A DNA stretch of 56,915 bases, counting the filler, from Trichosphaerium sp. ATCC 40318 (taxonomy: Eukaryota > Protista > Tubulinea): assembly GCA_038496445.1 (NCBI GenBank). It is 2 parts of 2 records of this genome, joined end to end, with 100 filler letters (N's around TTAATTAATTAA, not from the genome) between each part and the next. Parts side by side here need not be neighbours in the genome. Positions count along the whole stretch, not along the records: positions 1 to 26,685 come from JALMLS010000212.1; 1 more part is not named here. One strand, 5' to 3'. Shown piece after piece: positions 6,890 through 25,611 of the stretch. The position numbers and the translations under genes are program-made. Each line of letters begins with the position of its first letter. Within the stretch, counting starts at the first letter, position 1. A model generated the notes under the pieces. The model worked only from the letters and a program-made list of their open reading frames with translations. It ran no database searches and had not been told where the DNA came from.

Positions 6890-8161
6890 CTATGGCAAAT
6901 ACGTAGAGGAAAACGCTTCTTGCCACATATTAAAGGACTGGTTTGTGATTTTTACAATGCATCCTAGAGAGTCAACCATCTTCTTTGTTATATGAGTACC
7001 ATCACAATAAATGTAATCAAGGCTTGTTAAACCAACAATTCCATCATCTGTGATTTGTGAGCAGTACTCTAGAGATAATTGCTTAACACCAATAAGACTG
7101 TTCACTCCTTTATCTGTTATGTGGTTACAATTGTGAAGGCTTATGACTTTAACACCAACCAAGTATCTTAAACCTTCATCTGTTACAGATGTGCGATTAA
7201 GAAAAATTGCATGTACTCCAGCAAGTGCCTTCAAAGTAGTATCATTAACACAGTCAAGATACGAAATATCAATGACTTTTACACCTGCCAATTGTTTTAT
7301 CCCATCATTTGTTACTAATCTACAACCAGCCAAGGCAATGCGACGTACTCCTACCAAACATGATAGAGTATCATCTTTAATATGTGTATAACCAAGCCCT
7401 ATACAAGGTATACCAGCCAAAAGTTGTAACACATTGTTTGATATTTGAGTACAGCGATTAAGATTAATTTTTTTGATTTTGTTTGTTGTTTGATTTTGTG
7501 TTAGCAGATACTTTACTCCTTCATCTGTAATGAGTTTACACCCACCAAAAGATATTTCAGTTGCATTTGTTAGTGCTCTTACACTTTTATCTGTAATACA
7601 ACAGCATCAAGCTTTATCTTGTGTACACTACCTGCAATGGCAATGACACCTTTGTCTGTAATATAGTAGCAATATGTTAAGTTAATGGTGTGAACCCCAG
7701 CAAGCGCTTCAAGTCCTTTATCTCTTATATTTGTACGTGTAACATCAATTGTATGAATACCATGAAGTGATTTAAATCCAAAATGTATGAACTTGCATCG
7801 AAATTTTCTTATTCGTAGTTGCAGATGATGTACACCTGAAATATGTTCTAACATAACATCTGTAAATGAAATCCTCTGATCTTTTATTTCAAGGTGATGG
7901 ACACCAGAGAGATTTTTAAAGTCATCATCAGTCATTTTCAAATGATTAATAAGTATTTTAGTATTTTTCAAAAGAGGACTTCCACACAGCGTGACTAGAT
8001 TTTCTCTTGACTTGACAGTCACCGTTAAATACCCCAAATGATTTAGAATGATTGTAGAAAAGACTTTACAAACAAATGTGGCAGATATACGGCATTTCTT
8101 GCCCAAAAACGCCAGAATACAAAATATAATTTCTGTCGGTAGCTGAAGCAATTCAAATGGC
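6890..8161 (-). pseudogene. F-box/LRR paralog with 1-bp frameshift near 7606 and no in-frame ATG in exon 1
   Basis: ORFs 7579-8151 and 6890-7432 are collinear with 24048-25338. KIKLDHCC becomes KIKLDAVV* by a 1-nt deletion. Same intron (8231-8162). Confidence 0.8.
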
Positions 8162-8839
8162 CTGGTAATACGTAATTAGGAAAGATTGTGGTTTAGCGAG
8201 TAAAAAGCTAGGCTATTGTAAAAAAACGCACTCTAGTGTTGCACAGTAAGACCTTGTGTTTTATTTCCTTATAAAAACAGTTTTTCAAGGCACGGGAGGG
8301 AAATAAAAAGGTGAAGATTTTGAAGTGTAATTGTAAACAGCAAATCTTTTTCCAATGCTGCTTTTTTATTTGAAAAAAAATCAGTCTTGACTGTCTCTAA
8401 CAGCTGTTCTTTAGCAAAACACAAGCATACCTCAATTTTTCTACAATCCCAATCGCTGCCGGAGTTACTATGAAACCGGATATTGTGGATACGGCAACCT
8501 CTGCAGGTGGGAACACGGAGAAACTGACTGGCTTCCAAAATACAAGCAAAATGAAGTTTGCGAAGGAAAAGAAAAAACAATTGAGACTATGCGTGACGAC
8601 CCCTTTATTGCTAGATACGGCCAACGAAAACGTGGACTACAATAAAATGTATGCACTTTTAACAAATACTGTCATGTCGCACATGTGTTCTAATGTGATA
8701 AGGTTGAACAATTTAGACCTTCCAAATTCGATCAGAAACCAATATTGTACGCCAGAAAAGGAAACCACGTGTAGCTCCATTTGAGCATATTGTATTACAA
8801 AGAATACAGATTACACTAAATAGAAGTATACCCTTAAAT

Positions 8840-9430
8840 CTACGTATCTACAGTTCCTGGGTTGCGAAGAATCTCTCCTTCATATGTTTTGAGTTGTTTC
8901 ATAAATCCATCATTTGGCTCTACAAACGGCCTCACGGTTCTAATGTGATCTATAGCTTGTTTTATACCGTAACCTTCAACATTCATCATGTATGCAATAA
9001 CTATAGTAGGTGCTCTACTTGCTCCAGCGCCACTAAAAACCACAATTAACGAGTCACATTTTCGTTGAAGTTATGTTCAAAGTATTTTGCTCTTCTTACA
9101 TACCAATGAACTAAAACTCGTCCTTTGTTCTCTAGCGCTTCTGAAATGAACATATTACACTCTTGAAAGTGTTCCCGGATGTTTGTCTTTTCATTATCCC
9201 AGAATGTAAGTACTTTGTACTTAAAACAGTCTACGAATGGAGGAAAAGGCATTGTATCGCATATCATCACAATATGGGTTATTTTATTTTTATCAAGCGC
9301 TTTTTTATCGTTAGCATCGCTTCTTGAGCCCTTTCAGTGCGTTAGAATGTGGTTTTAATGAAAAGAAATGTATGAATGGACAGAATTGTTTATGACGTAC
9401 TAAAAACAGACCAGGCAATACTTCATTCAT
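8840..9430 (-). CDS. Atypical dual-specificity protein phosphatase
   Basis: MNEVLPGLFLGS...ITHIV, FWD, spliced VHCGAGASRAPTIVIAYMM (HCxxGxSR), RPFVEPNDGFMKQL. Confidence 0.88.
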
Positions 9431-9668
9431 TGCTTGTACGTGTGTTGTATTATTAACTTGTAATAAATAGGTGGCACAAAACCCCGATTGTTCAGTGAAC
9501 TACTTTAAGTTTAACAGCAATCATGTTTTACATCTCTCGTAGTCAATAACGTGATTTTACTATTATTCACAATCACGCGTGTTACCAGTTGCAACAACCA
9601 TCAATATATACAAACAGAAGTAAAGGAGAACAAAGAAAGACATGATAATTAAGAACTTTTTTTTTGCT

Positions 9669-12503
9669 TTATTGTTTAGCTTTACCAGCCTGTAGAATCT
9701 CGTCTACCAAAAGCAAATTCGTTGCAACACTGATAGCAGAGTGAAGAAGTTGTCTTTTAACTCTGTAAATATCATAGACGCCAGCAGCTTCAGGGGACAT
9801 TGGCTTACCACTCCAGATATCAAGTCTTTAAATAAAACAGTAAGAACAAGCTTGGGAAATTATTTTTCTAATTGTTTTTTTCAAAGTAATATATTGGCTC
9901 CTGCAGAAGGAAAAACTACGTTTAATATCCGTAGAGCGCCATCCAAGAAGCCGTAATGTGCACGCACAGAAGAAGAAAAAAAAGAGAAAACACAAGGCGA
10001 GAAAAAGAGATGAGAGAAAAATAGTGAAAATCAATTTTGTTTCATGATAACATACCCAACGCAGTGACCCTTTTTATGTTCAGATTTAAGTGCCAACAAT
10101 GCATCAATTTGGTCAATACCAGAGTTAACAGCAAGAGTCTTTGGGATAGCCAAGAGAGCATCTGCAAGGCATTCTACACCAAGACGTTTACGGCCTTCTA
10201 CAGATGAAGCAAATTCATGCAAGAAAGCAGAACATGCCATTTCAAAAGCACCACCACCCTAAAAACCGGCGAGTCAGAATCGAGCGAGTACAGTTCACCG
10301 AACAGCGAAATAAAGAAACATTTCAAAAAAAAAACAACAAAATTGATTGATTTTGAAAATGTTCAAGAAAGAAGGCGTACAGGGACAACACATTTATCAT
10401 CAATGGTGTTTTTAACAGCACGAAGACCATCACGGATAGCATCCTTAATTTGATAGATAGTATGCTTGTTAGGACCTAGAGAGAAAGTCAAAAAAAATCC
10501 TTTTAAAAAAAATGCGATAAAACCAGAATACTTCAAGCTTCGTACCTTTAATCAAGATACTGCAAGAGTTTGGATTTTTGACGTCCTTTACAAAAGTGTA
10601 TTTCTCCTCTCCGAGAACTTGAGTGTAAACAGTACCGGCTTGACCCAAAACTTCTGGGGAAATATCTTCCAAGGAGTTTACGGCAGTACTAAAGGAAAAA
10701 TGTTAAAAACGAACATAAAAAAAAAAAAGAAAACAGACGTACCCGCCACAGGCAAGCATGAGACGTTCCATGTTTCTACGCTTAGCACGTCTGAGGGCCA
10801 TAATACCTTCTTTAGCGAGCATATCAAGGCTCATAGGGTCAATACCCTACAAAGAAAGATTAGCTGAAACATCTCCACAAAAAAGAAGCTTGGTCCAAAT
10901 TTGTGCAGTTTTTATGTTTTAAAGCGCTTACCTTTTGGTTGATAATGACGAATCCTTTGTCTTCAGTATCACATACTTGTCTCTTAAGTTCGATGATCTT
11001 TCTTACCTTATCATCACAAAATTTACGTTCACCTTCAACGAGTTTCTGACGTTGTTCAGCAGATTCCCAACTGGCTTCTAAAGAAAAAAAAAATAATAAA
11101 CACATGCCCAACATGTTACTTTAAAACATTTTCTTATTAAATGAGGGGGTTTAAAATCAGCTATCTATGGGTTTGAGTTTCATCGTCAAAGAACTTACGA
11201 AGACCGTCGTTGTTTCATCATTTAAACAAAAAATCGAAAAAAAAAAAAAAACCAAACAACCGAGAAAATAAAACTTTGTTGGAAGAAAAATGGCGTACCA
11301 TTGTTAGTATCAGCTTTCTCGAACTCAAGGGATACGTTACAGGTGAGAATAAAGCACTAGTTATAAAAATGAGATAAAAAGAAAGCGATGTAAATGAAAT
11401 AAAATTAAAGTACGTTTTTAAGACGTTTTGGCATCTCTGGGTGTCTAGGACCGTGATCCAATACTAAACCCTTTACTAGTTGAGTGTCTACATCTGATTT
11501 ATGTTGCATAGCTTGGATTTCAACCTATACATTACGTCAAAACAAGAGTATCGAGCAAAAGAAAGTTGCAATCAAATTTTAAGCAAGATAGAAAATCCGC
11601 GCTTAAGGAGTTGTGCGTTTTTCTATTTCGCGAGAATCTAGTATCGTACCATGTGTAAATCGATTGGTTTTTCACCTTGTTTGACGCATAGAATGGCATC
11701 AACAACAACAGGCGTTAAAACGTTAGCGAGCTTGGCATGAACTTTAGTTGCCAAAGATGCGTTTGCTACGCATGACAAGAGTTCGTTGGTCATCTCTTCT
11801 GGTTTCTAAAAGCGTACCTGTCAGTCACGTAGAAAAATTAAAAAAAAACATTTGAAAACCCGCGTTAAACCACTGACGCTTACCTTTTGGATGGCGCATT
11901 TGTCTAAAAATTCCAATGCCTTTCGCTCAGCGAGGTGGATACCGTCTGCGAGAGCCCGTGGGTGAACACCTTCTGCCAACCATCGGCTAGCCTGAAAAGT
12001 GTCAGACGCGATGTAATAGTACGTTGTCGCTTACTTGGGAGAGGATTTCGCCAATAATGATGACATTGGACGTTGTACCATCACCTGTAATTTTATCTTG
12101 TGCTACAGCGCTGCGAGCGATTAAACTGGCGGTAGGGTGGTTTATGTGCTAGTAAATTACTTAGATGAAAATAACTGCGATTTAGGCGAGATCTAGAATA
12201 CAGCGTTGATGGCTAATGTACGCACCATTTCTTTGAGTAATACGTTTCCATCCTTTGTCAATTTAATATCGCCAGCACCAGAAACCAACCTTGAAGCCGT
12301 GTGAGGAAAATCAGTGTTTAGTGCCCCTGAGCGCTTCAAATCGCTCCAAATTACGGTATATCGTACATTTTGAGTGTTCCTCTTGGTCCTAGGTTAGAGG
12401 CGAGAATTTTTTGCAAGCTCTTCGCTGAGTTAATATTAATGAGCAGAGCATGCTGTGCGCTGGCAATTTGAGCGTCCTTGCTAACGAGCTTGAGGGCAGA
12501 CAT
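9669..12503 (-). CDS. CCT6: T-complex protein 1 subunit zeta (CCT chaperonin), multi-exon
   Basis: [83 protein letters not shown]; all characteristic of CCT-zeta. Confidence 0.95.
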
Positions 12504-12798: not shown

Positions 12799-13455
12799 AT
12801 GGAGACAGCCGAGAAAGTGTGGCAGGTGCTCGTCACTGGCTTATGGGGTAGTCGTGAGGGCGTTCTTCGCCTGCATGGCATAATAAACGTAACTTACGGT
12901 ATTGCTGCTTTGCTATCACCTACTATGGTGTTTCAGCATTTATATTCCGCTTCAGACAGTACGTAGATCAATATTATATTAATACAAGCGTTTTGGCTAA
13001 CAAAAGCGTAGTAATGTTCAGAACACTTGATTATTACTTGATGTGGGTACGTATAACGCAATGCTAGCTTTTCGTAGGCTTATACAACTGTCAGGATATT
13101 TTCGCTTGTCAGTGCCTGCCTTTAGGTGCACTTCAGCTATACGCATCGACTTCAAAGGAAGAAGACTTAAAAAAGGTACGTTGTCACTCAATAAACAAGA
13201 TTTCACTTATTGTTCGTGTCACTAAACAATTTCGCTTACAAATATCAGCTGGTAATCGCTTCATCTTTCTTTACACGCTCAGTATACGTTTTCTGCATAT
13301 TCTTTTATCCACTAGCCCACAATTTCGATTTTGGTTACCTGGTTGATAGGCCAATATCTGCGTTCTATAAGGTCGAAAGGATTTGGAGTTACTACTCAAT
13401 TTATCAACATTTTTATTGGGCTTTCTTACATGACGTATCAGACTATTTTATGTAA
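12799..13455 (+). CDS. Putative small multi-pass membrane protein, multi-exon; one junction near 13047-13077 is unresolved
   Basis: METAEKVWQVLVTGLWG...VTYGIAALLSP, LPLGALQLYAS, LVIASSFFTRSVYVFCIFFY; GTACGT donors. Confidence 0.4.
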
Positions 13456-13473
13456 CATCAACACTTGTATAAA

Positions 13474-16400
13474 CTCGTTATCCGTAACAAAAAAAAAAAT
13501 TACCTGTAACAAGATGTAATAAAAACCACTGTTGACCACCACAACTTTAATACTACTACAGTTGTTACCTATTCTGATAGCGCAAAAGTCCAATCACGCT
13601 GAATAAAACGTAAAACATTAGCAAGCTATGAAATCACGTAAAAGACGTGCCTATACACTTCATTTTCAACGTGATAATGTTGGCAGGGCTAAAGAGAAGG
13701 CACAGGCAAAAAAACGTAAACTATCTGACACTCGAGCGCAAAACAGACTAAAAGCGCAAAAAAAAAAACAAATAAGAACAACAGAGCAGAGTACAAACCT
13801 AAACAAAGTAATTGACGATGGTTGGCAAGTGTTACCGGACGAGATAATTTCCTTCCCTGAAATCAAGCATGTCTCTGAACCCTCTGGTAAAACTGGACGT
13901 TTTATATCCAACGCAGCTAAGTTGTTTGAGCGGTTGATACCTAGACACATTTGGGAGTTTATTTTTGAGGCGACAGAACAAACACGTCAAGACCACGAAG
14001 ATGAGTTCCCAGAATCAAACAGGACTTGGCATACTCCGTTTACCTTGCAAGAGATAATTCAAATGTTTGGTACATTACTTTTGTGGGAACAACGTTCCGG
14101 TGAGAGTAGTTACACGAATTTTTTGAACCAATTGAATGAATGGAAAAAAAAGGCACGTTGGTGTAAAAAAAAACCTATTCCAGAAAGGCGATTTGGTGTT
14201 TTAAGGAAATGTCTTACTGCTGATGTGTATGAACTGTGTCGTAAGGTGTCAAAGTGCTTAAAAATGGCTTGGAAATCAGGGTACATAATTGTAATAGATG
14301 AAACAATGTTAGAATGGAAAGGAAAAGGAGACAGTATAATGTGTATCAAAGGCAAACCCCATCCACTAGGCCTTATGATCTACCTAATGGCGGTTTATTC
14401 TGACAAACATCAACACAAGCCATACATTTTGGGAATATACCCACATTGGATGCCTCATGCAAAGCCACTGGATGCAACTAAACACTTGTTGGATTCCTTT
14501 TCATCACATTATAATTTCAAACCACATGTTGTGTTAGATTCAAGATTTATGGACAGGAGTTTTATGGGTTGGATGCGGCACTACATTGGAAGTGATGAAG
14601 GAGGAGCTACTGTTGCAATATCTGCTAACCAGCAGAAAAAACTATTTACCACTCTTGCTTGTGACGTTCCAGTTAACAAATGGAGAATTGCAAAGAACAA
14701 CAAGACAGGTGAAGTCGCTTCTTACAAACATGTTCACAATGATAGTGGGGATCCTGTACATTGGCGACTATTAACATTAGGTTGGAGTGTTGGTAGCCAC
14801 GCCATGTTGAATAGCATGCCTGCCTTTTCAAAGCTTGCAGAGTTTGAACTTTTGTGCAAAAATTTTACTGTAGACTCATTAATAGGCTTTGTTAGAAACA
14901 GCAACAAAGTAGCAACAGGTGGCAAAGAAGAGTTAGCTATGGCAGCTTTAAACTTAACTGCACTTGACGTGGCATCACTAAGAGAGGTGCGAGATATTAG
15001 AACTGCAGAACAACAAGCCAGGGAAGAGCAAAAAAACAAACAACAACGAAAAACCGACATTCATTGTGTGAAAAAGTGTTTATATGGAGGCAAAGATGAC
15101 AAAAAAAAAGCAATGATGTTGTGCAATTGTTGCAGCACATGGTTCCATGGAAAATGCTTAGGATTGAGTGATAAACAACTTGCTCAATCAAACCCAAAAG
15201 AACGTTTTTACTGTAAAAGTTGTGAAAACAAACTGGTTCAAGTCCGCACTAAATCAAAAACCTGGACCAGAGAAGAGTTAGAAAAAATGGACAAAACTGA
15301 ACTACTAATCCAATGCCAAGTGTTGGGCGAAAAACGAGCTGGTAACAAACCAGCATTAATTGCTAAAATCTTAAAAGCAAGTGATCCAACATTTGAAAAT
15401 AATTTTGCTATTCAAAATAAGCAATTTTTGGGGCCTCCTCGCTCTGGTCCTGCCGTGATGCATGATTTTTATAAGTCTCACTTTGATGTTGTTGATCGTG
15501 CTAATCAAACTAAGTGGAGTACCTCAATACCTGGTCGAGCAACAGAACAATCTTATCGAATGATTATTGGAATAATGAAAACAACCATTACATCTCTTGG
15601 TGCCATCATGGATTATAATTTGGAAGATAAATGCCCTAATCACAATCAAATACATCTTACGCTTGCAAAGGCCATGTACAATGGCAACATTTATAAGTAA
15701 TGTATACCAATAAATAAAAAAAAATTTCTTTGAGACTACGTTTCCAATTGTTTATTCATAGTGTAGCGTTAGTGAAATTATGATAGTAGCTACCTAGTAG
15801 CACTGTAGCTGAGTAACAGAAAGTGTTTCAAATAACAACAAAGTAACTTTCTGAATTTTTTTTTTGTATTCACGAAAAACAACCCAAAAAAAGTAATCAC
15901 AAACAGCAAAAGTCATAAAACAATGTTGTATATATAAACACAGCTGTATTATATAGGATCAAATAATCAATTTAAACCACATGCACAATTGTAGCATGTA
16001 AATTGCCTTTTGAAAACATACAAAAAGTCCAAAAATCCATTTTGTGGAAGTGTTTGTAGCTACTTCAGATGAACAATTCAAGCACAGTGCTCATATATGA
16101 CCCATAACACGGCAATTTGAATAAAAATTATCCAAAATTGAATGAAAGAGTCTGTGTAGCAAACACGACAAATTTGAAAAAAACAGGTTTTTAATTTTCA
16201 ACAAACTTTATGACACTTGCCAACTCCATCACCAACATTTAGTGCTTCAATTAGTCGGTATGATATTACAATGGTCTTCATTTACATTATAAGCAAACAA
16301 CCGCAAATGCTGAGTCAAATGATGGAACATTATTGCTATATTGTAAACTCATGTATAAAAAACGGGAAAAATTGGAATCAGTAGCTTTGGACTAACAACT

Positions 16401-16561
16401 TGTTACGAAATACTATTATCATGAAGACGTATGTTTTGAACTTACAGGCATGATTAGAAATGATGATGCGTACAGCAAAGAAATTCGAAATAAGGGTGCT
16501 GAGGAATAAGAGTAGAAAAAATTTGTTACAGGTAACTTTTTTTTTTGTTACAGGTAAAGAG
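13474..16561 (+). mobile_element. piggyBac-superfamily DNA transposon, full length, 39-bp imperfect TIRs
   Basis: Left TIR 13474-13512 CTCGTTATCCGTAAC(A11)TTACCTGTAACAA; right TIR 16523-16561 TTGTTACAGGTAAC(T10)GTTACAGGTAAAGAG; ATAAA on both flanks; encloses an intronless transposase. Confidence 0.85.
13628..15700 (+). CDS. piggyBac-like DDD transposase with internal SAP-like, PHD and SAP domains
   Basis: IVIDETMLEWKG...KGKPHPLG (D224), HVVLDSRF (D304), FYKSHFDVVDRANQ (D623); C4HC3 PHD at 15065-15223. Confidence 0.88.
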   Translation: MKSRKRRAYTLHFQRDNVGRAKEKAQAKKRKLSDTRAQNRLKAQKKKQIRTTEQSTNLNKVIDDGWQVLPDEIISFPEIKHVSEPSGKTGRFISNAAKLFERLIPRHIWEFIFEATEQTRQDHEDEFPESNRTWHTPFTLQEIIQMFGTLLLWEQRSGESSYTNFLNQLNEWKKKARWCKKKPIPERRFGVLRKCLTADVYELCRKVSKCLKMAWKSGYIIVIDETMLEWKGKGDSIMCIKGKPHPLGLMIYLMAVYSDKHQHKPYILGIYPHWMPHAKPLDATKHLLDSFSSHYNFKPHVVLDSRFMDRSFMGWMRHYIGSDEGGATVAISANQQKKLFTTLACDVPVNKWRIAKNNKTGEVASYKHVHNDSGDPVHWRLLTLGWSVGSHAMLNSMPAFSKLAEFELLCKNFTVDSLIGFVRNSNKVATGGKEELAMAALNLTALDVASLREVRDIRTAEQQAREEQKNKQQRKTDIHCVKKCLYGGKDDKKKAMMLCNCCSTWFHGKCLGLSDKQLAQSNPKERFYCKSCENKLVQVRTKSKTWTREELEKMDKTELLIQCQVLGEKRAGNKPALIAKILKASDPTFENNFAIQNKQFLGPPRSGPAVMHDFYKSHFDVVDRANQTKWSTSIPGRATEQSYRMIIGIMKTTITSLGAIMDYNLEDKCPNHNQIHLTLAKAMYNGNIYK

Positions 16562-16789
16562 ATAAAAAGAAAAAAAAGAAACAACATCACAAAATTCTTG
16601 CGTGTCATTCATCTAGTACCTGTCATGATAGACTTTTTACCCTTAGGTTTCAACCAAGAATCGATGCAATCAAAACAGTATTCAAATCTGTTGGCTTGCG
16701 ACCATGGTTGACCGGAGGCACTTATCGTTTGGCCTATTAGGCAGGTTTCTTAAATAGGCTATCGCGACTGGCATCAAATTGTTCGCTTG

Positions 16790-19284
16790 ATGTACACATT
16801 TATAAAGCAGAAAGTCAGCCAAGACAAAAAACGGTGTAAGTTACTTGTATTGAACAAAAAGCAACGCGCAAAACTGTATATAGTCACTTGACGCGTTTTA
16901 AATTGTTTTACAATTTTCTGTATCGAGAGTAACCTTCAAGTAGTTAATGATGGCCGATACGATTTGGTAATAATATGCGTGTATTATTTCTAACGCTAAC
17001 CGCCGATCTTTAGGATTTGGGCTATATAACGCCGCAAATCATTGGTAACTTACCTCCTACGCCTTTTAAATACTAAAACCACTTAGCTATGGGTTTCCCA
17101 GCAACTGGTATTGAAGCTACATACAGAAATGATATAAGTCACGTCTCGGCAATGTTAAACGAACGTCACAGGGATCATTACTTGGTACAATAGATTTGGA
17201 AAAAAATATAAATCAATTTACAAAAAAAAATAGATATTTAATCTCAGCCAACGCAAATACGATACAGAGTCATTCCACAATAAGGTAACATTAATTACCT
17301 TCATATTCTAGTGAAGAGCTACGCGTAGATAGCAAAAAAGAAAACATGCCAAACTACGCTGTATACTCTCTTCACGTTTTTAGTCTACCTTTCCCAAAAA
17401 TCACGTGTTTGAATCTTTCAAAGATATTTTCTAAATCAATACTATGTTTTCACGGTTTTATTAATACGTTACAGGTATTGGATGTCGGGTGGCCTGATCA
17501 TCACGCGCCGCCACTTCCCTTATTATTCAAAATAGTAAAATCCCTTCATTCTTGGCTTTCTGTTAGCCAAGAAAACGTTGCTGTTGTACACTGCCTCGCT
17601 GGTCGTGGTCGTACAGGTAGGCATACATTTGGATGCATTTTATTAGAGTAGACACGCTCCTTTTTTAGGTTTTTCGTGGTTCATTTTTTGTTGATTTCTT
17701 CGCTCATTTGACGAACTAAATTAGGAACTGTGGTTATAAGTTACCTCATGTATATATCAAAATTTTTACATATAGACAATGCCATGAAGTTTTACGGTAT
17801 CCGTCGGTCGCATAATCAGGTTGGAGTGCGACAACCATCACAACGAAGGCACACCTTTTTTTTTTTTCAATTCTTTCTTCTTTTTTGTCGTTTGTCAAAA
17901 TAACATACATGACTGTATTGTAAAACATAGTTTTTGCATAGATCTCGCTCTCAGTAGTCTTTTTAGGCTGTTCACGTTTTTTTGGCTTACATGGTATTTA
18001 GATACATTCGTTACTTTGGCAGAATTATGCAAGGTGAAGATCCACGCCCAAAATACTTCAGGTAAAGGACTTTAGTCTTCTTATTGTTTGTTTTAATATT
18101 ATTTCTAGACTCAATGCAGTCAGGATAGGACCTATACCTATTATTGGAGGCGGTGGTATGTCTGAAAGTTTTCATCTTTTTTGCCTCTTTTTTCCAAGCT
18201 TGGGTTTTGTTTATTGTTGGAGGTTGGTTCCAGTGATTGGGGCTAATGTAATGTAGGTATCCGACCTCTCTTATATATCTACAATTGCTCTAAAAACAAA
18301 GAGAATACACTATTCTGTTCAGAGACAAAACGTGAAAAAGCTACAAATTACTTACCACAAGATGGAGTGAGTGTTATTTGGTTTTGGGTTTAGCCTCTTT
18401 TGACGTTTATACAAGGTAATGAGGTTTGATACAAGTGGCATAGAGCTGAAAGGGGATATTGTAATGAAATTGTATCATATTGGCGGAAGCGCTTTGCTTG
18501 GTACAAAGCGGTAAGTTGATCAGGTCTTCATTTGAGAATCTTTGTATTTGGAATTTTTGTTTTGTTTTTTGGATTCGTCTTTTCTGACGGTTTTTAGGGA
18601 GTCTCTGGTCCGTTTGTCATTTAATACGGCATTCTTAAAACATGATGAAAATGGAGATGTTGCTTTTACAAAACAAGATATGGATATTGCTTATAAAGAT
18701 AGCAGGTAAGATTTTTTTGAAAGTCGTTCAAGACATTCTCTTGGTTCGCTGCTCTCTCAATATATAGTGTTCTAATTATTTGTGTAGGATATCAGATGAC
18801 TTTAAAATAACTTTAGTAGTCTCTGAAGGTGATGAAGACGTGTCAGGTGCGTAACAAGATTCTTATTTTTTTCTTCGTTTTTTTTCTCTTGTAATGCATT
18901 TCTCGCTTACTTAATTATGTTCTAGATTCATGGAACCCAACACTTGTTGAATACATGCTAGATACACATAACAAAATGAAAAAATCAGCTAAACCAATCG
19001 ATGGAGATCCAAACTTTGACATTAAAGCATTGGCAAAAGCAGGTGGTAAAAATGAGCCAATAGAAGCTTTAAGAAGTGATTGGGTTGTTGTTGACTTGAA
19101 AGGTAATAAGCTGGTTGAATCGAACGATTCAAAAGGAGAAGACGATCCAAAAGAAGACTCTGAGGATTCAGAGGATGAAGACGAGGAAACCACTAAAGAA
19201 GATACTGATAAGGCAGATAAAATACGAATGACATTAGATGAGGACAGCGAAGAGGAACCAGAGAAGGGTATTGAGACTATGTAA
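16790..19284 (+). CDS. PTEN/tensin-type phosphatase with C2 domain and acidic tail, multi-exon
   Basis: MYTFIKQKVSQDKKR, DLGYITPQIIAMGFPA, YRN, WPDHHAP, HCLAGRGRTG, PSQRRYIRYF, LKGDI, FNTAF. Confidence 0.88.
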
Positions 19285-19677: not shown

Positions 19678-22600
19678 ATGAAGCACCGTGTGGAGATTGT
19701 ACATCACCCTGAGGATGCGCCTAACGTACAAACAAGCGCTGCAGGACGATTTAGAGTGGAATGGTACCGACCGGCTCTAAAGTACTGTAAGTGATCAAAC
19801 ATCGCTCTCAATCAATAATCAGCGTGTATTTACGCTATTTTCAGGCTCAATCCGTACAAATAAACCATGGGATATTACAAACGCATCAACAGTCTCTTAC
19901 TTTGAAGTAAACATTGAACAGTGCTCCGACGCTATCGGAATAGGGTTGACAGCTGATAATTATGAGTTAAAGGATAAAATGCCAGGTAGATACACAAACA
20001 CGTTAATCATTTATACAAACCAACGCCGGCCATTAATTTTTTATTTGTATGCAAACTATTTTTAACGGTCTTAGTTCTTTCTTAATTGTGTTTTTTTTAA
20101 ATGCTGTTTAAGGTTGGTCTGAGGACTCTATTGGTGTACACTCAGATGATGGTAAGCTATTCGTAGATGCAGGGATCGCTAGAGACTTCACAAACCCGTT
20201 CAATAACAAAGGTAAAATTATTGTTTTGTGTTTTGTGTTTTGTGTTTAGGCCTCTTTTGATGATTTTGTTGTTAGGCGCTGTCGTTGGTGTTGGCATGTA
20301 TCCTTCTGGTAAAGTATTCTTTACCCGTCAGGGTAAATTTATAGGCACTCTTTGTACACTTGCAAAGGATGGTTGTCAGTTTGTGTATCCAACAGTTGGT
20401 TCGTTCTTATTTTTTTTATTGTTTTTCACTTTTGCATCACGTTTCTCTTATACATTGCGTAGGTGTCGCCGATAGGAAAACATCAGGAACGATAATAGAA
20501 ATTGTTCTGTCTGGGCCATTTAAATTCGACTTGAAGAATCTTGAGCCTGATGTAGACGATAAGGAGAGTTATCGTGTTGCATCCTGGGGTTATGGTAATC
20601 TTGGAAAGCTTGGTCATGGAGATCTCGTTTCTCATCAGTTCCCTTGTGAGATACCTTTACTAGAGGATAAATATATTATTTATACATCAGCAGGACATGA
20701 TCACAGTCTCGCTATAACACGTTAGTTCCTTAAGAATTGTAGTATTAAACTAACACTGGATATTAAGAAACTGGAACAATTATGGCTTGGGGAGCAAACG
20801 CTTTAGGTCAACTGGGTATAGGAAATAACGACAAGAGGGTTTTCAAACCAAAGGAGCTAACGTATCCAAAAAGATGCTTCACACAAGTGCGTTGAAACTG
20901 CTACATTCTGTTTTTTCAAAGTACTAATTTTTTTTATCCAAAAAGGTATCAGCTGGCTATCATCATTCTTTGGCATTGACACGTGCGCTCTGAATAAAAT
21001 GCATTTCTAAATTTACATTTTCATAGGAGAGGGCGATGTCTTTTCTTTTGGTTATGATGGTAGCACTGGATGTCTTGGTGTAGGAAAGGATAAATCTTAT
21101 AGTCTTACTCCTGTACCAATACAAACACCACGTGGTGTAATATTCAAAAAAGTTGTAGCAGGAAGTTCTCGTAGTGCTGCATTGGATGGTGCGTTCAATA
21201 GAAATACGATTTTTATCTCTAGTGGCTTGAGTTGATTGTATTTGTAGTAAACGGTGGATTATGGGTGTGGGGCGAGTGGTCATCGCCTGTTGTTGAGCCA
21301 AAAAAACTAAGTATTTCTAAGAATAAGTTTATTCAAGTCGCTCTTAGCAATTACATTGGTGTTGCAATGACAGGTACTTACCTGTTTTTTTTTTCTGTGT
21401 TTTGAATAGTGTTGCTCTGGAGAGTAACTTAAAGTCTCGTGTTTTACTCACTGATGTTTAGACAAGGGGTATTTGTACTCGTGGAGACATGGATCAAAAC
21501 CTGCTGCTATGAAAGAAGCAAAAAATATTCAATTCGAAATGTTAGATGCATGTGATGGACATATTATTGCTCTTTCTGTTGATGGTAGATTATTTTCTTG
21601 GAACCATGGACAGCTTGAGGATTGTGAGAATAGGCTAACTTTTAGAGGATATGATATATGCTTGAATAAGCTTGAAGGGAAGGGCTTAAAATTTACTAAA
21701 ATTGCAGCTGGTTGGAGACACGCTCTTGCGCTTACAGGTTCTTCTTGTTTTTTTTTTGAACTAAATTTGTAGCTAAGATAGTACTCACTCTTATACTTAG
21801 AAGCTGGTGAATTATATTCAGTTGGGTTTTCAAAACTGGCAGGGACTTTAAGTTCAAAAGCAACGTTAACAAAGATGGATGGTATAACTCGTTTTTTGTT
21901 GATTTGTTGTTAACACGTGTTTTTTTAAGGTTATTCTGACGTTTCGTTTACTGATGTTTCTGCTGGCACAATGCACTCTTTAGCTCTTTTACGGAGCGTA
22001 GAACAACCTTGGCATATTCCTAAGGACCTTATATCATCAGGGAAATGGGAGCCAATAGCATCAGGCCGATACCCTCCAAAGAAAAAAGAGATTGAACCAA
22101 ACAGGTAAACAATACAAACAGCATTTTCTACCTCCTTATAAATTTTATCACGTGAAACTTATGTTATTTACTTAGGTTTCTAAAGAAACCTGAGGGTGTG
22201 GAATATGCTATTGCGAAAGACTTATTTTGTGAAAAGCTTGGTGGTCAAAACTTTGAAGTAAAAAAAGTTTTCGTTGTTGAAAATACTGGACTAGAAAACG
22301 CTTTCACTTCAGAGCTGGAAAAACTTCGACACAAGTTCGATGCTACGCCGCACCTATTTAGAAGAGGTGATTGGGTCGATCTTCCCAAGAGAAAAGAACG
22401 AGATCATACACTCAATAGACTAGGAAAGTTCTCAAATCAGTTCACTTGGAACGCTGGAAGAGAAGTAAGCTTACTTAGTGTATTTTTTTACATTGACTTA
22501 TCAACGTTTCAGGTCACTGTTGTTCCTACTGTCCATGGTACAAATAAAGAAGCAGTATGGAGTATTTGTAGTGGAGGGTTCAGTTCATTGGCAAGGTTAA

Positions 22601-24047: not shown

Positions 24048-25447
24048 TTAAAAATCAGGCCACAATTGCTTTTCGACAAGTTTGAGGCCTAGAGAAACAG
24101 CTGCTTTCTTTGGTATTTGAGTACCCTCAAACCAAAGGTAATCTAGGCTTGTTAAATTGACAATTCCATTATCTGTGATTTGTGAGCAGTGTGCTAGATC
24201 TAATTGCTTAACACCAATAAGACTGTTCACTCCTTTATCTGTTATGCGCTTACAATTGTAAAGACTTATGACTTTAACACCAACCAAGTATCTTAAACCT
24301 TCATCTGTTACAGATGTATAATCAAGAATGATTGTATGTACTCCAGCAAGTGCCTTCAAAGTAGTATCATTAACACAATCAAGATACGAAATATCAATGA
24401 CTTTTACACCTGCCAATTGTTTTATCCCATCATTTGTTACAGATACACAGCCATACAAGTCAATATGACGTACTCCTACCAAGCATGATAGAGTATCATC
24501 TGTTACTTGTTTACAACTGCGCATGTCAATACAAGGTATACCAGCCAAAAGTTGCAACACATTGTTTGATATTTGAGTACAGCCATCAAGATTAATTTTT
24601 TTGATTTTGTTTGTTGTTTGATTTTGTGTTAGCAGATACTTTACTCCTTCATCTGTAATGAGTTTACACCCACCAAGAGATATTTCAGTTGCATTTGTTA
24701 GTGCTCTTACACTTTTATCTGTAATACAACAGTGGTCAAGCTTTATCTTGTGTACACTACCTGCAATGGCAATGACACCTTTGTCACTGATGTTTTTACA
24801 CCAGTCTAAATTAATAGTGTGAACCCCAGAGAGTGCTGAAAGTCCTTTATCTGTTATTTTCGCACCTGTAACATCAATTGTATGGATACCAGCAAGTTCT
24901 TGAAGCCATTTATCTTTACAATACCATTTTGTAGTTAGTGTATGAATACCATGAAGTGATTTAAAACTGCATTCACTTTCACGTTCAATCTCTAGGTCCA
25001 GATGATGTACACCTGAAATATGTTCTAGCATAGCATCTGTTAGTAGTACAGCACCATTTATTTCAAGGTGATGGACACCAGAGAGATTTTCAAAGTCATC
25101 ATTAGTCATTATTAGAATACCATCAATAACTATTTTAGTATTTTTCAAAAGAGGACTTCCACACAGCGTGACTAGATTTTCTCTTGACTTGACAGTCACC
25201 GTTAAATATCCCAAATGCGTTAAAATGATTGTAGAAAAGAGTTTACAAACAAACGTGGCAGATATACGGCATTTCTTGCCCAAAAACGCCAGAATACAAA
25301 ATATAATTTCTATTGGCAAGTAAAGCAGTTCTGATGACCTAGTAATACGATTAGCTATCGAGATGATACAAAAATCATAACTAAAAACCACGTGACGTAT
25401 TATGCGAAAAAAACATACTCTGGTAGCTCTGCTGATGTATTTAGCAT
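24048..25447 (-). CDS. Intact F-box/LRR protein (exon 1 25447-25419, intron 25418-25339, exon 2 25338-24048)
   Basis: Spliced MLNTSAELPE-SSELLYLPIEIIFCIL (F-box-like) followed by ~14 cysteine-containing LRRs (ITDKGVxxLxGVxxIxL). Confidence 0.85.
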
Positions 25448-25611
25448 ACACATACTTTTTGGCTCTCGTAAAAGGTGCATTCTTGAATAAAATTTTAATG
25501 TATTAAGTCTGTGCCTACAGTTAAGACCTACACCATGGGGTGACTGTTTTATAGTTTGTAGCGCTTGGGTAGTATATTCAAAGAGGTCATCATACGACTA
25601 TCGAGCGTTTC

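Follow-up and report, generated by a model that had tools for sequence, protein, structure and literature searches.

The DNA stretch analysed here (the window; 56,915 nucleotides, including the filler between two joined records) comes from the genome of Trichosphaerium sp. ATCC 40318, and its positions 13474-16561 are strongly supported as an autonomous DNA transposon of the cut-and-paste type, present as one intact copy and belonging to a divergent piggyBac-related lineage. The element is 3,088 bp long, is bounded by inverted repeats at 13474-13512 and 16523-16561, and contains an open reading frame (ORF) of 2,073 bp (690 codons plus the stop codon). A first-pass annotation of the same DNA had claimed that both the ORF and the terminal inverted repeats (TIRs) are intact, and that a block of SAP, PHD and SAP modules sits within the catalytic core of a piggyBac-type transposase. 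The ORF at 13628-15700 does run uninterrupted for 690 amino acids, and the block follows the second catalytic Asp and precedes the third. The features of the element, in window coordinates, are as follows.

13469-13473 (no strand): left flanking 5-mer ATAAA, a putative target-site duplication, identical to 16562-16566 and abutting the TIR
13474-13512 (+): left TIR, with a CTCGTT terminus, a 12-mer, an A11 tract and a second 12-mer (GTTACNNGTAAC-type palindromes)
13628-15700 (+): transposase ORF, uninterrupted, 690 aa, a piggyBac-type DDD enzyme without the cysteine-rich domain (CRD) at its C-terminus
13628-13816 (+): N-terminal basic helix, residues 1-63, whose M-x-K/R-R-K-R start is kept in full-length relatives
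14297-14299 (+): catalytic D224, first Asp (IVID224ET), aligned to piggyBac D268
14537-14539 (+): catalytic D304, second Asp (VVLD304SRF), aligned to the Asp of piggyBat 'MDNYY'
14792-15436 (+): inserted cassette, residues ~389-603, after the insertion domain's last strand and before the helix bearing D623
14828-14947 (+): SAP-like helix-extended-helix motif 1, residues ~401-440, with model helices at 415-424 and 433-440
14960-15046 (+): long helix in the structural model, residues 445-473, possibly a coiled coil
15062-15226 (+): PHD finger (Pfam), residues 479-533, with ligands C480, C484, C499, C502, H507, C510, C529 and C532
15269-15382 (+): SAP domain 2, residues ~548-585, a family-wide module
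15494-15496 (+): catalytic D623, third Asp (DVVD623RANQ), aligned to piggyBac D447 in 'GGVD'
15701-16522 (+): 3' non-coding part of the element, with no noteworthy ORF
16523-16561 (-): right TIR, whose reverse complement starts CTCTTT
16562-16566 (no strand): right flanking 5-mer ATAAA, matching the left 5-mer

Three sources are concordant on a piggyBac-type core, namely Pfam, a family profile and a structural match. Pfam DDE_Tnp_1_7 matches residues 203-286 with 26.8 bits (cut-off 22.4). Canonical piggyBac is out of reach for a single-sequence search, and only the family profile and the fold reach it. The profile was derived from a family alignment of 62 relatives (A1) and searched against solved structures, where it matches piggyBac 6x67 (E 4.7e-23) and piggyBat 9c0f (E 8e-16). 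In these profile alignments, the family motif 'vvavDE' pairs with piggyBac 'LTIDEQ' (D268), 'vvlDAaF' with piggyBat 'YMDNYY', and 'FYkehFnlVD' with piggyBac 'YYNQTKGGVD' (D447). The triad named by the first-pass annotation (D224, D304 and D623) is thus borne out residue by residue and aligned to solved structures; Asp occupies the three columns in 50/52, 52/53 and 46/46 of the A1 sequences, respectively.

An AlphaFold2 (AF2) model built on A1 (mean pLDDT 86.6) superimposes on 6x67_C with Z 29.1 and a root-mean-square deviation (rmsd) of 3.5 Å over 366 aligned residues (VIA-align). Model residues 81-687 correspond to residues 117-514 of 6x67_C, and because 607 model residues cover 398 piggyBac residues, the core must hold ~210 extra residues. 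The protein stops at the residue aligned to piggyBac 514, i.e. at the end of the piggyBac core and before the CRD. Nothing in the superposition corresponds to a C-terminal CRD, Pfam zf-Tnp_2 has no match, only one Cys follows residue 563, and the CRD is also missing from all full-length relatives. The structural superposition therefore shows that the long D304-D623 spacing (319 aa), the internal insert and the absence of the CRD, all of which had been proposed earlier, are real. An AlphaFold check had also been suggested at that stage; model and profile together place the cassette inside the piggyBac-type core. These results support a deeply divergent, piggyBac-related lineage. The basic helix at residues 1-63 is probably a nuclear localisation signal or a DNA contact.

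The cassette comprises ~215 residues where piggyBac has a loop of ~13, ahead of the 'kP..i..YN' segment, and opens with a SAP-like motif, which is followed first by a long helix, then by a C4HC3 PHD finger and last by a SAP domain. Evidence for the last of these comes from the family as a whole: Pfam SAP matches 19 of the 62 members, SAP_new25 matches 10 more, and the family profile matches the SAP domains of Ku70 (E 1.6e-12) and THO1. The window's own copy of SAP 2 falls below Pfam detection alone, its segment aligning in register with the family, and the second SAP of the first-pass annotation is accordingly upheld at family level. A SAP precedes the third Asp in ~47 of the 62 aligned relatives and, because of this spread, can be regarded as a trait of the lineage.

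Motif 1, found in ~20 of the relatives, appears to be SAP-like. Its family profile aligns with the SAP2 profile in hhalign (92.9 %, E 3.8e-7, 36 columns); against the PDB it yields a weak match to the DEK SAP (E 0.36), and no member-level Pfam match was assigned to the segment. The first SAP claimed earlier is thus retained as a SAP-like motif by hhalign, with only a weak match to solved SAPs, and of the claimed coiled coil there remains a single long helix, predicted at residues 445-473.

Pfam PHD matches residues 484-532 with 30 bits (cut-off 24). All eight C4HC3 ligands are present, and every one is kept in P0005 (P labels denote metagenomic relatives or elements, and L labels their metagenomic contigs). 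The spacing of the first ligand pair, C-x3-C, is unusual, which makes the earlier description of a 'canonical' C4HC3 PHD slightly generous. The retention of Met and Trp, also claimed earlier, was confirmed, M496 and W505 being invariant across 27 aligned PHDs. The closest solved sequences are those of PHF2, CFP1, DIDO1, PHF8 and BPTF. When modelled alone on the 27-sequence alignment (pLDDT 74.5), the domain has its best fold matches in BPTF, PHF2, PHF8, AL1, TAF3, Pygo, MLL1-PHD3 and CFP1 (rmsd 1.7-2.6 Å), each of which has been solved with, or is known for, peptides di- or trimethylated at lysine 4 of histone H3 (H3K4me2/3). In the alignment with PHF2, H479, Y486, M496 and W505 pair with Y7, Y14, M20 and W29, presumably the methyl-lysine cage positions, with BPTF Y10 presumably equivalent to PHF2 Y7. 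Both by sequence and in the model, the PHD looks like an H3K4me2/3 reader.

As for the source of this domain, the C1-x3-C2 spacing and the pattern [YH]C-x3-C-x-[YF] recur in the PHDs of multi-PHD + SWIB proteins. Because this pattern is common to both, the sequence points to a putative capture from a host chromatin protein. A relocated piggyBac CRD was considered as the internal zinc module and rejected, since the module has its matches among PHDs of host type, PHD+SWIB proteins included, and none to zf-Tnp_2.

The TIR arms are 39 nt long and 90 % complementary. They score 58, as against 24 +/- 2.3 in shuffled sequences (maximum 34), form the sole significant inverted repeat around the ORF, and bear out the earlier claim that the TIRs are intact. 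Each arm consists of a terminal hexamer and two 12-mers, the first a palindrome of GTTACNNGTAAC type, with 10-11 A/T as a tract between the 12-mers, and all four clustered GTTACNNGTAAC-type 12-mers in the window fall within the arms. Canonical piggyBac TIRs begin 5'-CCC. Those of the present element are unlike them, as TTAA flanks are missing and the start is not CCC. Across six related elements (that of the window and five metagenomic ones), the termini read CTC(G/C/T)TT in all, and TTAA on both sides occurs in none. Three hallmarks of classical piggyBac elements are thus missing, namely a CRD, a TTAA target and termini that begin with CCC.

Other candidate ends were also considered. All TTAA pairs around the ORF were searched for TTAA-flanked TIRs, of which the best had 9/13 matches, i.e. 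chance level. An outer inverted pair at 13328-13354 and 16729-16755 was 74 % complementary and was rejected as the ends of the element because its score of ~19 is below the shuffle maximum of 34.

The 5-mers that abut the two arms are identical, and the chance of identical ATAAA flanks at fixed boundaries, estimated from base composition, is ~0.003. The flanks of this and three metagenomic copies are given below.

Window: 5' ATAAA, 3' ATAAA
L001: 5' TTTAG, 3' TTTAT
L004: 5' TTGAA, 3' CTGAA
L011: 5' TTTAA, 3' G+TTTAA

In addition, the 5' flank on L010 reads X-TTCAA and the 3' flank on L008 reads TTGAA-TTGAA-rc(X), an arrangement expected if two copies had inserted in opposite orientation into a repeated target and each had duplicated 5 bp. 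Other metagenomic contigs with mismatched flanks are demonstrably chimeric across the repeat. On these flanking sequences, a 5-bp TTNAA-like target-site duplication is likely.

In the search for relatives, a word-index protein search gave no match for the single transposase or for a 10-sequence alignment, and an exhaustive HMMER search gave 144 proteins, the best of them 36-44 % identical. All 144 come from metagenomes or Logan assemblies and are named at most 'hypothetical protein'; ~90 are relatives of the transposase, and the remainder match the PHD alone. In none of the databases searched did a relative exceed 44 % identity. Searches of a phage collection and a metagenome locus scan with the single protein gave no match, a locus scan with alignment A3 gave one further contig of the P0005 element, and an ESM Atlas feature search with the cassette half gave no usable match. 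A look-up of DNA and RNA sequencing runs listed none.

Several of these relatives are present on more than one contig. For instance, five contigs of the PHD-type P0005 element are 100 % identical to L002 wherever they overlap with it (over 2,199 bp for three of the five). Past ...AACGAG, identity ends at once in four unrelated 3' flanks, and immediately ahead of CTCGTT... there are two 5' flanks, which are likewise unrelated. The P0182 element, which belongs to the P0002 cluster and has a knuckle in the cassette, is found on two contigs that are 100 % identical over 2370 bp and differ in their flanks; its TIR is a perfect 23 nt and starts CTCGTT. The two contigs of the PHD-type P0100 element are 99.6 % identical over 2331 bp from CTCCTT and have unrelated 5' flanks. 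The P0100 TIR layout (CTCGTT, ~12 nt, A9, TTACTGTATCA...) matches that of the window, including TTAC..TGTA after the A-tract. Because these termini and this layout are common to multi-copy relatives with different flanks, the repeats in the window can be taken as true element ends. Judged from these junctions, the lineage is mobile, with recent transposition in the clade that bears the cassette with a PHD or a knuckle.

A tree of the core columns, from which the cassette was left out, unites the window and P0005 with the trio P0001/P0002/P0009 (SH-aLRT 100), and within this clade the trio is nested (SH-aLRT 89). The full PHD is present in the window and P0005, and the trio has CxxC-x(3-7)-CxxC. 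P0022, which lies outside the tree, has a CxxC knuckle with x8 spacing. In all four of P0001, P0002, P0009 and P0022, the 4-Cys knuckle aligns to PHD ligands C2, C5, C6 and C7. P0100 is the third PHD-bearing element, and the PHD is seen in these three elements only. On this distribution, the PHD is a rare clade trait that was apparently reduced to the knuckle in one branch. One clade, to which the present element belongs, added the SAP-like motif, the long helix and the zinc module in the same loop as the lineage-wide SAP.

Further observations concern the contigs of the relatives. At L007:2359-2400, a copy of the P0005 element abuts sequence resembling the 3' half of a tRNA (GGTTCGATTCCC T-arm, acceptor-like end), in which ARAGORN finds no complete tRNA; the copy may have inserted into either a tRNA gene or a repeat derived from a tRNA. 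At L009:2140-2256, the P0010 element runs from its 3' end straight into its own 5' end, of which the four leading bases (CTCC) are missing, a junction that could be the head-to-tail joint of tandem copies, an excised circle or an assembly artefact. A gene for a DDE_Tnp_4 (Harbinger/PIF-type) transposase lies tail-to-tail with the P0010 element at L008:2193-3632. The two P0100 copies differ in the 5' TIR, where A9 in one is exchanged with T9 in the other (L014:242-290 vs L013:233-281). The transposase genes of relatives have short GT..AG introns of ~43-60 nt at differing positions (L007:1097-1139, L008:~895-955 and L013:~2440-2490), one of them within the SAP2 coding region of the P0100 element, while the window copy has none. 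Finally, at L002:2245-2736, 46 bp separate the end of a P0005 copy from the downstream ATG of a putative gene, an ORF of 163 aa without a Pfam match.

In its own genome, the element lies in a divergent intergenic region. To its left, the minus strand carries a gene for a CCT/TCP-1 chaperonin (Cpn60_TCP1 matches), with exons at 9.7-12.5 kb and a start near 12503; to its right, the plus strand carries one for a PTEN-like phosphatase (Y_phosphatase match), with a putative ATG at 16947 and exons through 17618. The distances are ~970 bp from the CCT-like start and ~386 bp from the PTEN-like start. The first-pass annotation had put a host ATG ~230 bp beyond the element; this is not supported, as the nearest start with homology support is the one at 16947, ~386 bp beyond the right end. 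The position fits a promoter-proximal insertion, as a single case.

The surrounding region holds further genes. Host genes with short introns are found at 8843-12503 (-), 16947-17618 (+) and 20360-21772 (+), and encode a dual-specificity phosphatase, the CCT/TCP-1 chaperonin subunit, the PTEN-like phosphatase and an RCC1-repeat protein. Paralogous F-box + LRR_6 genes are found at 6890-8172 and 24048-25451 (also 1078-1458), with blocks that are 82-98 % identical. The copy at 24048-25451 is one ORF of 467 aa, and that at 6890-8151 is split into ORFs of 180 aa and 190 aa and is perhaps, because of this split, a pseudogene or a gene with an intron. The best match of the neighbouring F-box/LRR protein is 30 % identical (an MMETSP transcript). 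Rfam and tRNA scans of the window gave no match.

The joint best explanation of these data, to which we give a probability of roughly 0.7, is a divergent piggyBac-related transposon in which the SAP would bind the element ends and the PHD would tether the transposase to chromatin methylated at H3K4 (H3K4me). In the proposed mechanism, the SAP module would take over the DNA binding that the CRD performs in piggyBac and may act on the A-tract-bearing TIRs. The PHD would bind the methylated H3K4 tail, and the enzyme would thereby be tethered or gated at the chromatin of active promoters; where the genome is compact, this would yield integration upstream of genes. The parts of this explanation differ in strength. 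We infer H3K4me reading by the PHD and promoter targeting from the sequence, and the chromatin-reading mechanism taken by itself falls somewhat short of even odds. Of similar standing is the fullest version, in which an H3K4me-reading PHD in the core tethers or allosterically gates integration at promoters, in an undescribed piggyBac-related lineage with SAP in place of the CRD and a 5-nt stagger.

Several points weigh against this explanation. The role of the SAP in end binding is a conjecture, and histone reading and promoter targeting rest on inference from sequence and model. A perfect 5-bp duplication is found in the window only, while the metagenomic contigs have flanks that agree at 4/5 positions or are mismatched, and may be chimeric. 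Within the PHD, residue 479 is a His where the cage aromatic of PHF2 Y7 or BPTF Y10 would be expected, the equivalent of Tyr486 is missing in P0005, and model confidence is only moderate (pLDDT 48-78 within the whole protein and 74.5 for the domain by itself). Insertion sites are represented by a single genomic copy whose flanks are reliable, and in a compact genome selection alone would favour such an intergenic position. In addition, knuckle-bearing sister elements still transpose, and reader function would for this reason be inessential to the lineage.

Some of the same points would suit a PHD that is not an H3K4me3 reader and instead binds unmodified H3, another protein or DNA, or is a structural module heading towards the 4-Cys knuckle, with integration independent of the mark. 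The sisters P0001, P0002, P0009 and P0022 retain only CxxC..CxxC, the P0182 element is still mobile, and both the replacement of a cage aromatic by H479 and the unusual C1-x3-C2 spacing agree with such a PHD. Moreover, the CRD of canonical piggyBac is described as a PHD-like cross-brace finger that binds DNA (PMC5861402). However, W505, M496 and Y486 stand at cage positions, and across the aligned PHDs the Met and Trp do not vary. H3K4me2/3 readers make up all of the best matches, by sequence as well as by fold, and the PHD is closest to host PHD+SWIB proteins and not to the transposase CRD, with no zf-Tnp_2 match, so that a non-reading PHD is judged unlikely, though it is a serious competitor to histone reading.

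Two other explanations concern the state of the element. It could be a real transposon copy that is now inactive, an old single insertion whose ORF is intact by chance, as might be suggested by TIR arms that differ at 4/39 positions, a right terminus of CTCTTT vs CTCGTT, the lack of any relative >44 % identical in the databases searched and the lack of listed sequencing runs. This is improbable, as an undisrupted 2,073-bp ORF that keeps its catalytic and zinc residues would be unlikely to persist in the long term without selection or recent activity, and the flanking 5-mers are still identical. Far less probable again is a domesticated, immobile host gene of the PGBD or Tpb2/PiggyMac-like kind, whose PHD and SAP serve a chromatin function. 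While the ORF is intact with all catalytic residues, lies in a gene-dense region and occurs only once in 26.7 kb, and histone-tail-binding domesticated piggyBac proteins do exist (PMC3861120), it is bounded by significant 39-nt inverted repeats and a flanking 5-bp repeat, and shares its CTCGTT terminus and TIR layout with multi-copy relatives that have different flanks. An intact, autonomous copy of a mobile element thus remains the preferred account.

The literature searched yielded no account of a piggyBac-type transposase that carries a SAP or has a PHD inside it, and the element is a member of a mobile lineage that is undescribed there. The suggestion of a possibly undescribed lineage made by the first-pass annotation therefore stands for the architecture, but piggyBac-type proteins with SAP are already present in ESM Atlas clusters. 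The part without a precedent in that literature is SAP-PHD-SAP inside a piggyBac-type core; besides the atlas clusters, PHD and SAP were already known as accessory domains of transposable elements. For example, PHD fingers occur in Rehavkus, CR1 and Chlamys Penelope-like elements, while Zisupton and one Penelope-like element of Physarum have a SAP; both are recurrent accessory domains, at times inserted within an enzymatic domain (PMC8557442, PMC6446971). These elements belong to other superfamilies, and neither domain is reported there in a piggyBac-type transposase. The ESM Atlas clusters, annotated as 'Transposase IS4/SAP domain-containing protein', combine DDE_Tnp_1_7 with SAP and come from Chlorophyta and diatoms where taxa are known. 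They share the piggyBac-type core and the SAP with the element, whereas no PHD is recorded in them and the proteins are longer (864-1137 aa). They are probably the same broad lineage, but their membership is no more than a lead, as the feature scores are only 0.82-0.83.

Among enzymes that are joined to a chromatin-binding module, Tpb2p is a domesticated piggyBac whose CRD binds H3K9me3/K27me3 tails and directs the site of DNA cutting (PMC3861120). Tpb2p/PiggyMac and the present transposase both join a piggyBac-type nuclease to a PHD-like zinc module. However, in Tpb2p/PiggyMac this module is a degenerate C-terminal CRD in an immobile host gene, while in the element it is a C4HC3 PHD of the H3K4me-reader type (by its sequence) that lies inside the core of a transposase whose ends are kept. 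RAG1/RAG2 is a DDE-type cut-and-paste enzyme coupled to the H3K4me3-reading PHD of RAG2. The element would resemble it in concept, as a DDE enzyme with a PHD that may read H3K4me3, but RAG1/RAG2 belongs to an unrelated, Transib-like superfamily and has its PHD on a separate subunit. The homology is that of the generic PHD fold only, and the Pfam RAG2_PHD match to the transposase is weak and sub-threshold (14.3 bits). Should the PHD read H3K4me3, the element would be a natural case of chromatin-mark-guided DNA transposition, comparable with RAG2 and with integrases that have a chromodomain, and targeted vectors could be modelled on it. Transgenesis and gene therapy rely on piggyBac as a main tool, and its insertion at chosen chromatin is an engineering goal.

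The closest solved systems are piggyBac (6X67/6X68) and piggyBat (9C0F). They have the same fold (Z 29.1 and 27.6, ~350-366 residues aligned), the same DDD triad with the same surrounding motifs, an insertion domain between the second and third Asp, and a single-ORF element with TIRs. In piggyBac, the C-terminal CRD binds the transposon ends. The present element differs in having no C-terminal CRD and ~215 extra residues ahead of the third-Asp helix, as well as TIRs that start CTCGTT and an apparent 5-bp duplication in place of TTAA. The loop ahead of the third catalytic Asp thus tolerates ~215 residues with three modules of predicted DNA- or chromatin-binding type. Together, the CTCGTT ends, the absence of a CRD and the apparent 5-bp duplication offer a comparison for the TTAA specificity and seamless excision of piggyBac.

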